A stretch of DNA of 64,000 nt, from positions 1-64,000 of the forward strand of contig QPMI01000526.1 of NCBI GenBank assembly GCA_004431415.1. The letters run 5' to 3'. The notes under the pieces are model-generated. The model did not search any database. It worked only from the letters and a program-made list of their open reading frames with translations, and had not been told where the DNA came from. Source of the DNA: Cyanophora paradoxa CCMP329. Taxonomy: Eukaryota; Plantae; Glaucophyta. Both the position numbers and the translations under genes were made by a program. Positions 56,201 through 62,200 of this stretch are shown here, one piece after another. Each line of letters opens with the position of its first letter. Within the stretch, counting starts at the first letter, position 1.

Positions 56201-59200
56201 ACAGGCAATTATAGACCCTAGTAGGTGGGAACGGAGATAAATGGGAAGGGATCTACAAGATCGTAAAAATTCTTCCTTCCTATGGATCCTACGCACGCCC
56301 AAGGCGCCGTCTCCGGGCGCTAACGAAGCGCGCCCCGCGGTCGATCGCAGCGGGGGGAGGCGGAGCACCGGTTCCGCTACGCGCACCGGCACCGCCCGCC
56401 CGTCTTCCCCTCCTGCCGCTCCCACGGCCTCAACTCCTCCGTCGGTGAGATAGAATTGAGGCGAGGCTAGGCTAGGCTAGGCTAGGCGAGGCCAGGCTAG
56501 GCCAGGCCAGGCTAGGAGCCTTAGTCAAGGTTGTGCCTAAGACTAGACGCGAACCTTTAAGATTGTGCGCTTCTAGCGTTCTCCTAGCGCAGACCTTAGG
56601 GTTCTAAGCGTGCCGCCCCCCCGTCTTCCCCTCCTGCCGCTTCCACGGCCTCAACTCTTCCGTCGGTGCCCTCCGCCCCCGCCCCGCCCCGCCCCGCCCC
56701 GCCCTTCCTTCAATGAACGAAGTGCCGGGGCGAACCGGAATCAAGAGCATGCCTAACTAACAGGCCTGGGATTATGCGCTTCTAGGCGTTCTCCTAGCGC
56801 AGACCTTAAGATTCTAAGCGTTCGAATTCTTCTAGCGCAACCCTTAAGATATTGAGCGCCCTACTTCTTCCAGCTGACCCTGAACCCCCTCAGACTTCGC
56901 GGGCAACTTCGCGGCGCTGAACGCGGCCCTCGACGCCCACTTCTCGCCCCCGCTCCAGGCCCGCCCCGCCCCCGCCCCGCCCGTCCCGCGCTAACATAAC
57001 TTAAATCTCCCCCTCCCGCCCCGCCTCGCCCGAGGCCCCCGCCCAGCCCGCGCCCTTTTGAGCAGCTCTCCTCCCCTCATCTCCTGCCCCCCGCAGGTGG
57101 ACCCGGCGGTGCTGGCGTTCGTCGCGGGGCTGCGCCCGCAGCACCGCTGCTGCCCCAAGATCTTCGCCTCCATGCTCAACCACGGCTCCGTGCGCCGCCG
57201 CAGGGCCTCGATTGGAGCACAAGAACCACAACAACATAACGTTTTAGGGGGGCTCGATTGGAGGATAAGAACCACGACTAACTCAAACCGCATTCGGCTA
57301 TTCGGCTATCTCTATGCGCCTCGGCGCGGGGCTCCGAGCGCTCGATCAGAGCAGCGCTCGACTAGAGCTCGCCTGACGCCGACGCCCGCCGCCTTCCCGC
57401 AGCTGATGTCGCGGGCGTTCATGACGAGCCTGCGGAAGCCCGAGCGCGTCGTCGCCGAGGCCGTCAACCACCCCCAGGCGCCCCCCCGCCGGCCCGGCTT
57501 TCCCGTCTCCCCTCTTTCTGCTTCTTAGAGGAGAATAGACCCACCCCCCTCTTGTTAGGAATGAGTACGGTACCGGAGGTTAGGTTAAGGCCGCTCCCCT
57601 TCTTTCCTAGGCGCACCCTCCTCCACAGTTCCACTCGTCCCTCGCCCTTCCCCTCCTAACCCCCCCCCCCCCCCCCCTCCTCAGGTGATCGAGCTGAAGA
57701 AGGCGCACGACGACAACGTCAAGAAGATCGTCGACGAGTGCGGCCCCGCCCCGCCCCGCCCCGCCTTCATCCGCCCCCTCCGCCCCTCCGCTCTCCATTA
57801 TCTTCCTTCTGTTGAAGTTGCCCGCCCCGCCTTGCCCCCGCCCCGCCCGCCCCGCCCGCCTCCTCCGCCGCCCCTCCGCTCTCCATCTATCTTCCTCCTT
57901 TCCTCCTCTCTCCTCCCCTCCCCGCCCCCCCCCCCCCCCCCCTTCCCTCCCGCCCCGCCCTCAGACCTACCCCCGTCAGGTACGTGGGGAAGCTGGTGCA
58001 GCAGGAGTACGGGGCGGCGACGAGCGGGGCCTCGGAGCGCGAGCGCGCCACCCACTCCTCCACCCTCACGTGCGCCCCGCCCCGCCCGCCTCGCCCCGCC
58101 CTCGACTAGGACTCGGATGGAGGCTGTCAGTCTCTCTCTCAGTCTCTCTGTCGGATAGAGGCTGTCAGTCTCTCTGCAGCCGCCTTACTCTTCGGGCGCA
58201 GGGACGCGCACAAGTTCCGGATCGCGCTGCGGCGCATCCTCCCCGCCGACGAGTTCCAGGCCCTCGAGGAGCGCATCTGTGCGTACCCCCGCCCCGCCCG
58301 ACCCCCCTCCCTCGGCTCCAGAGAGAGCCAGAGACCTCTGGGACCGCCTAGATTCCCACCTTCGTTCCTCCTATCTAGAGGCCGTTTAACGCATCCGCCC
58401 GCCCCGCCGCGCCCCGCCCCGCCCCGCCCCGCCCCCGTCTTGAGCACATCTCTTCGAGGCTTGCCCTGACCGCCTCCTGACTGCCCGCTCCCGCTTGAAC
58501 CTAGCTTCCCGTTGTACCTAGCATCTCTCCGCCCGTCCTCGCCCCGGCTGCGCCGATCGCCATGACCGCCCCGCCCGGCCGGCCGGCAGACGCGCTGACG
58601 TCGGCGGCGCTGACGCTGGCGGGGGAGCCGATGGGCATCGGCTACGAGGCCGACCGCCTCATGGGCACCGACCGCGTGCGTGCACTTGCCCCGGGGCCAA
58701 ACAGGAGCCCTAGGGATAGAGGACTGGCTTAAGTTAGGCCTAAAACTCCGCTCACGAAGTATCTTATAAGCTTCCCCCCCGCAGCACGTCTTCTCCGTCC
58801 TCGGCCCCAACACCGGCCACCACTACGGTACCCCTTCCCCTTCCGCGAGCCGCGTACCCCACGCTCGCTCTCATTTTCGCCGCAGGCGATATCGTGCTCG
58901 TCCTGTCTGAGGACGTCATGTACCACCCGGTACCCCCCTTTTTCTGCGAGTCTTTTACGTTCTCACGTGTACCCAGGACTTCAACGTCACCCCGATGGCG
59001 GGCACGAGCTACAAGAGCGGGCGCGTCGTACCCCGCCGCCCGTGGGCCTTCCCCGACCGCCAGGCGTGTAGCCTTCCCCGCCTACAAATCGCCGTACCCC
59101 CCTCATTCTATTTTTAGATGCAGGAGCCGGAGTTCCAGGACCAGCGGGTGGAGGCCTTCCACCGATCCAAGGTACCCCCCTCTCAACTTTATTCCCCGCG

Positions 59201-62200
59201 TACCCCACTGAATCCCCCCCCCCGCAGCTGCACCCGGCGTTCCCAGGATGGCACGAGACAGCTGCCCGCGAGGCGAGCGGCGGCGCAGCCGCTTCCGATC
59301 TGCTCCGGTCTGATTCGGAGGGGGGTACCAGGTTACGGCCTGGGTACGGGCGAAGACGGGCAAGGAGAAGCCGACCCTCGAGGACGTGCTCGCGTGCGCT
59401 GCCTCGAGTTTGATTGACTCGAACCGGACCCGGCCGGACTCGAACCGGGGTCGCGGCAGGTACTGGGAGGGGGTAGACTCGCACTTCGTCTTCGAGTGCC
59501 ACCTCCCGCGCCTCGTACCCCTCAGGTGCGCCCCGCATAAGTCGCCCAGCCTAGCCCAGTATTCTAGAGAGTAGCTGTCGGAGCGCCGCGCCGCTGCCCG
59601 CGTCCTCGGATCCCCCTCTCTCTGACGCGGCGCGCCCCCCAGCTACGTCGAGAAGATCATCATGCCCAAGGTGCCCCCGCCCCGCCCCATCCCACCCGGA
59701 GCCGAGCCGAGCAGCCAGAAGCCCCGCCGCCCTCTCTTCCCTCCTCCCTCCCCCCCTTCCTCACCTGTACCCCCCCTCCCCCCGCAGGACATCTTCGAGG
59801 GGATGCGGGAGGAGGACCGGGCGCTGCTGCACGCCGTCTTCCCCCGCCTCGAGCAGGGTACGCGTCCAGATTCGACTCAGAGGGCGGGGGTCTCAGCAAG
59901 ACCCGAGGGAGACCTGAACCTCAGAGGGGCCTAGTGTAGTATAGTTACTCTCGAGCGTACCCCCCGCCTCGAGCAGGGTACGCGCCCAGTAGAGGGCAGT
60001 CCAGTGGTACTTTGTAGTCCAGGGGGGCTCAGTGCTTAGCATGTGAGGGCTTAGCATGCGCATTCATAAGGCTCAGTGCGCGAGTTAAGCGATAGGCGTT
60101 CGACGAAGCTGTCTGTGATCTCTATCTGTCTCGTTGGTCCGGGCAGACGTGCTGGTGCTATCTATGTATCTTTCTTAAGACCCCTCTCACTCTTCGTCTC
60201 CTTCTCCTCCGTCTCCTCACCTCCCTCCCTCCCTCCGCCCCTGGCAGACGTGCTGGTGCTGACGGCGCCGGTGGGAGCCGAGCCGGACCCCGACGTCCCC
60301 AAGAGCCTCCCGCACCCCTCCCGCTGCCCCCCGCGCAAGGAGGTGCCCAACCCCCCCTTTCCCCCCCCCCCCCCCCCCCCCCCCCAAACTCCGTCCCTTT
60401 CGCTCTCTTTCTGACTGCTTCGCCTCAGGTGTGGGACCGCTGCTTCGCGGTGGAGCGTAGCCGCGCAAAGGCCCTCGCGTCCTCCCCCGCCGGCCGCGGC
60501 CTCGGTACCCCCTTTGCTACGCTGCTGTACCCCCCCTTGGGCTTCGCTGATACCCCCGTGGGCCGCCGCCGGGGCTTCGCCCTCTCGCTGGCGCGCGACA
60601 AGGGCACGGAGACGCCCCTACCCCTCCGCCCGCCCGAGTCCGGCGAGCTCCACCTCTACTTCCAGGTACCCCGTCCGGAGCTAAAAATAGCCGCACGAGG
60701 CTGAAAATAGCGCGCGCGCCAGGCGAGGGGTAGGGACTTCTTCGTCGTTCTGGCCGACCACGAGGACGCCTCGAACGGTGCCGTACCCCACCTACCCAGC
60801 CCTACCCCCTCGACTTCCTTCTTCTTTGCGTGTACCCCTCCTTTACCCCCGGCCCGCGGCAGAGACGCGGCGGGTGCTGACCGTCAGCCTCCACCACGCG
60901 GGCGAGGGCACCGCCTACATCTCGGACCAGGTACCCCCCTCCCTCCCTCCCCCGGCCGCCCTCGTCTATCTACCCCTTCAAATCTTCTTCTCACCCCTTC
61001 GAATTTCCTACCATCTGAAGGTCCCCACGGCGCACAAGTTCGTCAACCAGTCCTGCCGCTGGTGCGCCGCCCTACCAGATAATGCAAGGCGCCGCGGAAT
61101 GTTTTATCCTATTATACTCGCCCCGCCCGCCCGCCCCTCCTCCTCGCTCTCATCCTCCTCGCCCTCCCTCACCCTCCTCCCCCACCCCCCAGGCTGGCGA
61201 TGTGCAAGGACTTCGACGCGGGGCTGGACCTGGAGGACTACACCCACTACGCCCTCCACTACTCCTACCCCAGGGTGCGGGCGGGCGGGAGAAGGCGAAG
61301 AAATTCTAAGAAAGAAGCAATCTTAGCTCACGGGGCTTAAATCGTAAGATAGTCTTGTTCAAGTCCAGAGAGTCTAGTCTAGTCCCCTAGAGCCGCACGG
61401 GCACTACTCTAACTTTGCTGCGGCAGGGGACGCTGACGGTGGAACACTGGGGCCCCTCGGCGGTCTACAACCGGCGCGTGCTCTCCGCGGACGCGACGGG
61501 GGGCGGGGCGGCCGCGGCCCCGCGCCTCGCCCACGTCTCCGTCTCCTCCTGGGGCAAGCCGGCCGCCTTCCGGTGCGCCCTTCGTTGTTTCTTTTTATGC
61601 TGGAGGCCGTTAAGATACCCAAGAAAGATAGAACATAGAGGAAGACGCCCTGTGTTTCATGATTATTATATGTGTTTTGAGGCTGTCGAGGTCGCGTCTC
61701 ACGCTCGCTCGCGCGCAGGGGCATCCGTATTCTCCCCCACCCGCTCCCCGCCATCCCCACCCCCGTCCTCGAGTACTCGCCGGCCCCGGCCCCGGCCCCG
61801 GCCCCGGCCCCAACCCCGGCCCCGGCCGCGGCCTCCCGCTCACCGACCGGCCCGCGCCCCGCCCACTACTCCGCCTCCACCCCCCCTTCTTCTTCTTCTT
61901 CTCCCCCTGCACCCCCTCCGGCCCGCCGCGCCAGTGCCGGCACGTCCCCGAGGGCAGCGGATCGGGACCTGCCGCCCTGCCCGGACGGCTTCCGCTGCGC
62001 TCGCTTCGCGGACCCCGCGCACGCGGCCGCCGCCTCGCACCCCTTCCCGCCGCCCTGCGCCGACTTCAGGCTCTGCCGCCTGGAGCTCTCGGGGCGGGAC
62101 CCGCAGCACGGCGAGACGCGCTCCCACCTCTGCCGCTACGGGTGCGATCCACCTTTGAAACCGATGAGCAGCCGTCCCTTTTTCGTAATCCATATATAAA

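Follow-up and report, generated by a model that had tools for sequence, protein, structure and literature searches.

We analysed a 64,000-nucleotide stretch of Cyanophora paradoxa CCMP329 (contig QPMI01000526.1, positions 1 to 64,000), hereafter called the window. Its guanine-cytosine (GC) content runs from 54 to 77%, and many short exons are separated by C-rich introns. On the plus strand, the locus at about 51.8-62.9 kb most likely encodes one large protein that the present annotation splits, because the exons for a PARG macrodomain, PBZ fingers, an ADP-ribosyltransferase (ART)-like domain and a beta-rich domain are collinear with long open reading frames (ORFs) of homologues. The ART-like domain lies at 57097-59857. 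We consider it likely that this is the catalytic domain of an active ART, predicted to belong to a previously unnamed family. A first-pass annotation of the same DNA had proposed a DarT/DUF4433-like ART fold here, with a large helical insertion.

The ART domain is built from 15 small exons on the plus strand, about 324 codons in all, where the first-pass annotation had counted about 14. Exon limits were set by eye and by reading frame, after which frame-preserving pairs of donors and acceptors were listed for each junction. All 14 junctions have a frame-consistent GT/GC-AG pair at sites typical of the locality (donors GTGCGC, GTACCC or GC; acceptors CCGCAG), and no in-frame stop occurs across the exons. 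Matches to homologues are given as z-scores against shuffled peptides. Exon 1 (57097-57189; z 9-15) encodes strand b1 with a conserved His (codon 57142-57144) and helix a1 (..KIFASMLNHGS). Exon 2 (57403-57477; z 6-8) supplies strand b2 (LMSR) and begins a helical insert, which continues through exons 3 (57685-57737), 4 (57980-58069, with an alternative acceptor at 57965) and 5 (58202-58278); these three are placed by in-frame splice sites and by a second copy described below. The insert ends in exon 6 (58590-58675; z 11-16), which carries the motif P.GIGY..D...GT. Exons 7 (58785-58827), 8 (58886-58929) and 9 (58977-59063) jointly encode strand b3 (VFSVLGP, with its Phe codon at 58791-58793), YG, strand b4 (DIVLVL), HPD and AGT..S..R.W, with z 5-20. 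Helices between b4 and b5 come from exons 10 (59118-59171), 11 (59228-59272) and 12 (59332-59393). Exons 13 (59460-59525; z 12-16) and 14 (59643-59670; z 4-5) jointly encode DSH, strand b5 with the Glu (59494-59496) and His (59500-59502) of an E-x-H-L-P motif, and strand b6 (YVEKIIMP). Exon 15 (59788-59857) adds a C-terminal helix after b6. Collinear homologue matches thus cover exons 6-9, 13 and 14 (z 4-20), with weak matches for exons 10 and 11; exons 3-5, 12 and 15, which lie in variable regions, are individually not significant against homologues by shuffle z-score. The four peptide stretches quoted in the first-pass annotation all occur where it had placed them: ..KIFASMLNHGS/LMSR across exons 1 and 2, GTDR/HVFSVLGP across exons 6 and 7, HHYG/DIVLVLSEDV across exons 7 and 8, and ..HLPRLVPL-S-YVEKIIMPK across exons 13 and 14. 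At 59830-59990 on the plus strand, the end of exon 15 and its donor (..CCGCCTCGAGCAGGGTACGCG) are repeated about 120 nt downstream, within the next intron, as a small local splice-donor duplication.

Searching with the two-exon piece at 59332-59526 (phmmer) retrieved P0001, a 636-residue protein with 100% identity, which is the product annotated for the locus (gene model tig00021012_g16993.t1 in EukProt). P0001 spells exons 6-15 exactly as they had been spliced in the first-pass annotation and lacks exons 1-5. Its start is an ATG at 58562, inside intron 5; the annotation divides the ART domain at this point, and the first ten or so residues of P0001 are probably intron-derived.

The window contains a truncated second copy of the ART locus, copy B, at 20788-24165 on the plus strand. 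It comprises upstream DNA, exons 1'-5' (21315-22522) and the first 25 nt or so of exon 6 (near 24140-24165), where similarity ends; the catalytic half, PARG and PBZ are all missing. Identities to exons 1-5 are 93/93, 73/75, 53/53, 89/90 and 77/77, or 385/388 in total (97-100% per exon). The introns are 52-75% identical between the two loci, and 52-64% around exons 3-5. We infer that exons 1-5 are real exons, because copy B keeps the exons but not the introns and because exons 1 and 2 match the N-terminal motif of homologues. The pattern would reflect either strong constraint on both copies, or very fast turnover of repeat-rich introns, or homogenization of the exons via a spliced intermediate.

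Residues 1-215 of P0001, used as a query, retrieved two relatives with 39-42% identity: P0004 from an ENA metagenome and P0005 from the bdelloid rotifer Didymodactylos carnosus. On the P0004 contig, the His motif is encoded just upstream of the called start. Scanning JGI metagenomes with the alignment of P0001 and its relatives gave 18 loci, most of them with uninterrupted ORFs of 1,700-1,880 residues at 26-35% GC. A profile built from ten domain sequences then retrieved 38 further proteins from Rotaria, Adineta, Didymodactylos, the fungus Jimgerdemannia flammicorona (Mucoromycota) and metagenomes. All 38 are named "unnamed" or "hypothetical", and a Pfam domain (PBZ) is present in one only. 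One metagenomic, rotifer-like locus (L004:767-1726) has an in-frame stop within the helical insert of the ART domain and may be a pseudogene or reflect a sequencing error.

A divergent subfamily (L018, P0027, P0028 and P0031-P0033) carries the motif LTPVHSL..KF..VL.SGGLK. L018 is a 1,128-residue ORF on a 91-kb contig, and its 6.2-kb locus has 26% GC. The two members that were looked up, P0031 and P0032, are on phage-like contigs; P0032 (L020/L021) is located about 4 kb downstream of a Phage_portal gene and belongs to one gene run with it. The phage-like contig L023 also encodes a protein with a faint DUF3626 match. A search for related loci in bacterial and archaeal genomes and IMG/VR gave no confirmed relative; these blanks reflect the patterns used, since the protein search later yielded the phage-contig members. 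In an exploratory tree of the catalytic half (FastTree, midpoint rooting, rows shorter than 110 residues left out), Cyanophora groups with metagenomic L019 (support 0.86) outside the rotifer clade; the fungal pair adjoins the phage subfamily. No direction of transfer is drawn from this tree. Conservation of the domain family extends over rotifers, a Mucoromycota fungus, eukaryote-like metagenomic contigs and phage-like contigs.

Sequence and profile searches connected the domain with no named family. The domain alignment gave no meaningful match to Pfam, NCBIfam, PADLOC or all PDB chain sequences, even at E 10, and single exons or stop-free pieces gave nothing useful for the ART domain against Pfam. 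The DarT/DUF4433 family (PF14487) had no match at E≤10 for ten domain sequences, P0001, P0004 and P0005, and no PADLOC model matched. Likewise, Pfam gave no Shigella_OspC (PF06128) match for the domain sequences. The domain is assigned to a new ART family and is not a sequence-level member of DarT.

Residue conservation was counted over 21-22 sequences from all branches, and over 26 aligned sequences for the Phe. The roles of His, Phe and Glu were assigned by strand position, using DSSP on the model of a homologue (L001, below). The b1 His, within [QRT]P.H[RS], is kept in 18/21 sequences. The b3 Phe (VFSILGP) is present in at least 90% of sequences. The b5 Glu is invariant (22/22), always as E-x-H, with L-P following in 21/22. 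This is the Glu that the first-pass annotation had put forward as catalytic: its FEC starts at 59491, as claimed, and conservation of both the His and the Glu agrees with the ART interpretation proposed there. Some 20 further residues are invariant, including D149, T154, G-P, Y-G, H-P-D, W208, K226 and H270 (L001 numbering). Among them are Asp residues before b3 and after b4, and the conserved Tyr (of YG) sits in the b3-b4 loop. The window exons carry all the family-invariant residues, including the His at 57142-57144, the Phe at 58791-58793 and the Glu at 59494-59496. By strand position, the residue triad of the family reads as H-F-E, not the H-Y-E of DarT2.

The fold was predicted for the intronless domain of L001 (307 residues), a metagenomic homologue that is 25-71% identical to the window per exon, using AlphaFold2 (AF2) with a 14-row alignment. 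The model has a mean predicted local distance difference test score (pLDDT) of 89.3 and a predicted template-modelling score (pTM) of 0.85. It shows the split beta-sheet core of ARTs, with the strand order b1-a1-b2 / b3-b4 / b5-b6. The DSSP elements are a strand at 12-16 (PVHRC), a helix at 18-27, a strand at 29-31, helices at 33-139, strands at 158-162 (VFSIL) and 173-177, further helices, and strands at 274-277 (ECHL), 280-282 and 286-290. The helical insert, about 105 residues between strands 2 and 3, agrees with the insertion of about 100 residues proposed in the first-pass annotation.

We compared the L001 model with 48,161 representative chains using VIA-align, independently of Foldseek. 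ARTs occupy all of the first eight places (Z 8.6-10.6), with matches that span L001 residues 1-307. They are Mycobacterium tuberculosis DarT (Z 10.6, root-mean-square deviation 3.4, 157 residues aligned), Thermus DarT (Z 10.6, root-mean-square deviation 3.3, 161 aligned), Thermosipho DarTG (Z 9.9), SopF (Z 9.5, and up to 10.0 over both structural comparisons), OspC3 (Z 9.4), DarT1 (Z 9.3), CopC (Z 9.0, 186 aligned) and a second OspC3 entry, a maltose-binding protein fusion (Z 8.6). Tpt1 follows at Z 7.5, and the first unrelated chain, at Z 6.9, covers the helical insert alone. A rescored Foldseek list gives a similar picture, in which Z is 8.6-10.6 for 14 ART chains and drops to 6.2 for the match that follows; the top rows of Foldseek against the PDB are SopF, DarT1 and OspC3. 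Two other sources provide leads only. Neighbours of P0005 in the ESM Atlas belong to DarT, DUF3626 and Shigella_OspC clusters, all below 0.9 or a TM of 0.5, and the viral structure library BFVD gave weak matches to baculovirus ORF32 and a DUF3626 phage protein. At the fold level, the model thus supports the ART assignment together with the helical insert of about 105 residues; by these scores, its nearest solved structures are DarT, SopF and OspC3/CopC. The DarT likeness named in the first-pass annotation holds for the fold, where DarT ranks top (Z 10.6), and fails by sequence, where no DarT profile matches at E 10; nor is DarT clearly nearer than SopF or OspC/CopC, which lie within about 1-1.5 Z units.

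The ART domain is flanked by modules associated with ADP-ribose. Exons of a microbial-type PARG macrodomain lie at 51805-53002 (plus strand), located by collinear tblastn of metagenome homologues, with the SALGCGAYGNPP loop at 52666-52737. In the homologues, PARG_cat_microb (PF10021) is found upstream of the ART domain with E 6e-23 to 9e-13; the match on the window piece is weak (0.16). The catalytic loop (51933-52045, plus strand) is split by a GC-AG intron. When a micro-exon of about 52 nt (approximately 51933-51984) is read, the PARG signature GGG-x7-QEE is intact (..PGGGWRRGAGAQ/EENLF); reading the loop in a single frame gives a false GGGTRAEE, from which the loop seems deleted.

Several exons for PBZ-like C-x-C-x-H-x-H fingers follow between PARG and ART, at 53632-56201 on the plus strand. 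The PBZ family (PF10283, zf-CCHH) is recognized in homologues, with 25.1 bits in L011 against a cutoff of 22.7, 18.1 bits in L001 and a precomputed match in P0037. The window fingers were matched by tblastn with the PBZ region of homologues and by pattern; the match to the APLF PBZ is weak (E 0.79). Downstream of the ART domain, exons at 60247-61570 (plus strand; tblastn-mapped, P0001 residues ~316-458) encode a predicted beta-sandwich resembling concanavalin A and galectins. This beta-rich domain, in a low-confidence AF2 model of P0001, has 61 Foldseek matches at E≤1e-3, and those listed are L-type lectins (ERGIC-53, VIP36 and legume lectins), galectins and related carbohydrate-binding domains; ERGIC-53, VIP36 and galectins match at E 3e-5. 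It is kept in rotifer-type and metagenomic homologues. C-terminal PBZ-like fingers occupy 61711-62916 (plus strand): P0001 ends at 62417, and a further finger at 62806-62916 matches the C-terminus of homologues, where the long metagenomic ORFs have their PBZ fingers. The intronless ORFs of 1,700-1,880 residues align collinearly with the window between 51.8 and 62.9 kb. The module order is PARG, PBZ fingers, ART, lectin-like beta-sandwich and PBZ fingers, and since these lie in one gene, writer, eraser and readers of ADP-ribose appear to be combined in a single polypeptide.

Elsewhere in the window, a tandem array at 225-5700 (plus strand) consists of about four units of approximately 1.51 kb, with copies 91-100% identical. 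The array has an internal half-period of about 720-790 nt and 70% GC, and its translations are rich in Pro, Ala, Ser and Arg. TRF, with its maximum period of 500, reported no repeat in 1-8 kb.

Taken as the catalytic domain of an active ART, the segment at 57097-59857 would be expected to bind nicotinamide adenine dinucleotide (NAD+) in the cleft between its two half-sheets. The Glu encoded at 59494-59496 would polarize the nicotinamide ribose, and ADP-ribose or a derivative would pass to an acceptor, which might be a protein side chain or, in a nucleic acid, a base or an end. Several points weigh against this assignment. The b1 His is missing in P0005, P0033 and P0036, which may be errors in gene models, and the catalytic roles of the His, Phe and Glu are putative, having been assigned by strand position. 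The modelled protein is a metagenomic homologue and not Cyanophora's own; the sole Cyanophora model, that of the N-terminally truncated P0001, folds poorly (pLDDT 52.5). Foldseek E-values are all weak, the best being 0.015, and Pfam, NCBIfam, PADLOC and PDB sequences link no named ART family to the domain. We found no transcript evidence for the splice from exon 5 to exon 6.

Two alternatives would deny the domain its catalytic role. Its exons could be reading frames that are open merely by chance in DNA of high GC content, or the locus could be a decayed pseudogene: at 67% GC almost every frame is open, the annotated model leaves out exons 1-5, and a truncated duplicate is present. Against this stand the 14/14 junctions in phase at consensus sites, exons that are 97-100% identical between the two copies where introns are 52-75% identical, collinear homologue matches with z up to 20, and the retention of all family-invariant residues with no in-frame stop. 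Splice phase, the paralogue pattern and homology lead us to regard this alternative as excluded. Alternatively, the domain could be a catalytically dead ART fold that binds NAD+, ADP-ribose or poly(ADP-ribose) (PAR) and serves as a reader or as a regulator of the adjoining PARG. In favour of this, pseudo-ARTs exist in the ART superfamily, and this protein already has readers (PBZ) and an eraser. Against it, all 22 sequences compared, from the rotifer, fungal, algal and phage branches, have the Glu (22/22), and some 20 more polar residues are invariant as well, a pattern typical of enzymes. Because of this conservation we disfavour a dead reader and think it quite improbable.

For an active ART, two kinds of chemistry suggest themselves, and we rate a DarT-like nucleic-acid target and an OspC-like protein-arginine target about equally, each being unlikely when taken singly. 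In the former, the enzyme would ADP-ribosylate a base of single-stranded DNA (or RNA), and the PARG macrodomain in cis would act as DarG does, making a single-chain module like DarTG. In its favour, DarT structures rank first in the structural comparisons (Z 10.4-10.6), the protein itself also encodes a macrodomain hydrolase, and DarTG is known in fused form from Thermosipho (7omu). The N-terminal motif of the domain, with the b1 His and the helix ..S[IM]L..G.[LV].S, presumably resembles the start of DarT, and the phage subfamily (LTPVHSL..KF..VL.SGGLKS) would show this best. Such an enzyme is harder to reconcile with the lack of any match to Pfam DarT or a PADLOC model, and with a partner of the PARG rather than the DarG type. 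An insert of 105 residues is too large for DarT chains of about 200 residues, as inferred from the aligned ranges, and the scores of SopF and OspC3 come to within about 1-1.5 Z units of those of DarT. The b3 Phe and E-x-H of the domain also differ from the H-Y-E triad of DarT2, which has Tyr (PMC11543638). This reading of the target is, in our estimate, doubtful.

The same residues point toward OspC/CopC. In CopC the triad is His137-Phe183-Glu325, the E-x-H pair E325/H327 is essential (E326/H328 in OspC3), and there are two essential Asp residues (PMC9239266). The domain likewise has the b1 His, a nearly invariant b3 Phe, an invariant E-x-H (L-P next in 21/22) and invariant Asp residues before b3 and after b4; it could, like those enzymes, modify a protein arginine, by ADP-riboxanation or plain ADP-ribosylation. 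OspC3 and CopC are aligned over the longest stretches, 169-186 residues at Z 9.0-9.4, and one feature neighbour in the ESM Atlas carries Shigella_OspC. By hhalign, the E-x-H-L-P of the family profile falls on E326-Y-H328-I-P of Shigella OspC2 (pCP301), but the result is weak (pairwise E 0.04-0.11, probability ~1%): against Shigella OspC2 and OspC4, the alignment is confined to E-x-H-[LI]-P and is not significant. The shared motif has only five residues, Z is below that of DarT, and Pfam Shigella_OspC is not matched. Ankyrin was not found in full-length homologues, no calmodulin-binding helix is known for them, and the domain downstream is lectin-like. DarT is thus ahead by fold score and OspC/CopC by active-site pattern, and an OspC-like enzyme is no more than a tentative proposal. 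An active ART of a previously unnamed family remains our preferred assignment.

To our knowledge, enzymes of the DarT type that ADP-ribosylate DNA bases have been described only in toxin-antitoxin and phage-defence systems of bacteria. It is possible, and we put it forward tentatively, that the domain is the first eukaryotic DarT-like enzyme to write ADP-ribose onto nucleic acids as an endogenous activity, built into one chain with its own PARG eraser and PBZ readers and related to phage ART proteins. DNA or RNA would then be marked and unmarked in glaucophytes, rotifers and some fungi, for instance at sites of damage. Eukaryotic DarT-like enzymes have been speculated on, with none named (PMC8501950). 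Our literature search, which excluded papers available by subscription only, found no ART domain in PARG-PBZ proteins and no eukaryotic DarT-like enzyme. Whichever acceptor is used, the predicted family would be an unnamed eukaryotic ART family with a DarT/OspC-like fold, always placed between ADP-ribose readers and adjoining a PAR-degrading macrodomain, and a concrete candidate for endogenous nucleic-acid or unusual protein ADP-ribosylation. The analysis corrects a gene model that splits the ART domain, points out a predicted catalytic domain beyond PARG in known rotifer PARG-PBZ proteins, and links eukaryotic and phage versions of one domain.

Among the closest known systems, the rotifer Adineta vaga has a PARG of bacterial type that carries PBZ repeats (PMC4245714, citing Slade et al. 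2011; PMC6445106). It belongs to the same gene family and has the same architecture of PARG_cat_microb plus PBZ repeats; those papers mention PARG and PBZ only, and the ART and lectin-like domains are not described in them. Phage ART-like proteins associated with DUF3626 and MuF, and baculovirus ORF28/ORF32, are weak neighbours by fold or feature. One subfamily of the domain is encoded on phage contigs, with a portal gene in the same run of genes, but sequence matches to these proteins are not significant and the kinship is a fold-level lead only.

The OspC3/CopC ADP-riboxanases and SopF (7wr5, 7xn4, 7dn9) resemble the L001 model of the domain at Z 9.0-10.0 over the longest aligned stretches (164-186 residues). 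OspC/CopC also have the H-F-E pattern in common with the family, as well as E-x-H-[LI]-P, which is a match of pattern only, the motif alignment being statistically weak. The Cyanophora domain differs in having no Shigella_OspC match, no ankyrin found and no known calmodulin or ARF cofactor module. These relatives are bacterial effectors, whereas the domain described here is part of a PARG-PBZ protein and not a secreted effector. DarT and DarTG (PF14487; 7omv, 7yk3, 7omu, 8baq) give the best structural match, with Z 9.3-10.6 over 147-167 residues distributed across the whole model. They share the order b1-His, helix, b2 through to b5-Glu and b6. A macrodomain hydrolase accompanies the Cyanophora domain within one chain, an arrangement also seen in the fused DarTG of Thermosipho, but it is PARG_cat_microb rather than DarG or NADAR. 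In contrast to DarT, the Cyanophora domain has no detectable sequence similarity to that family, contains the 105-residue helical insert, and has Phe on b3 instead of Tyr (DarT2 Y71, PMC11543638) together with E-x-H at the Glu. Its setting is eukaryotic, intron-rich and multidomain, with PBZ fingers.

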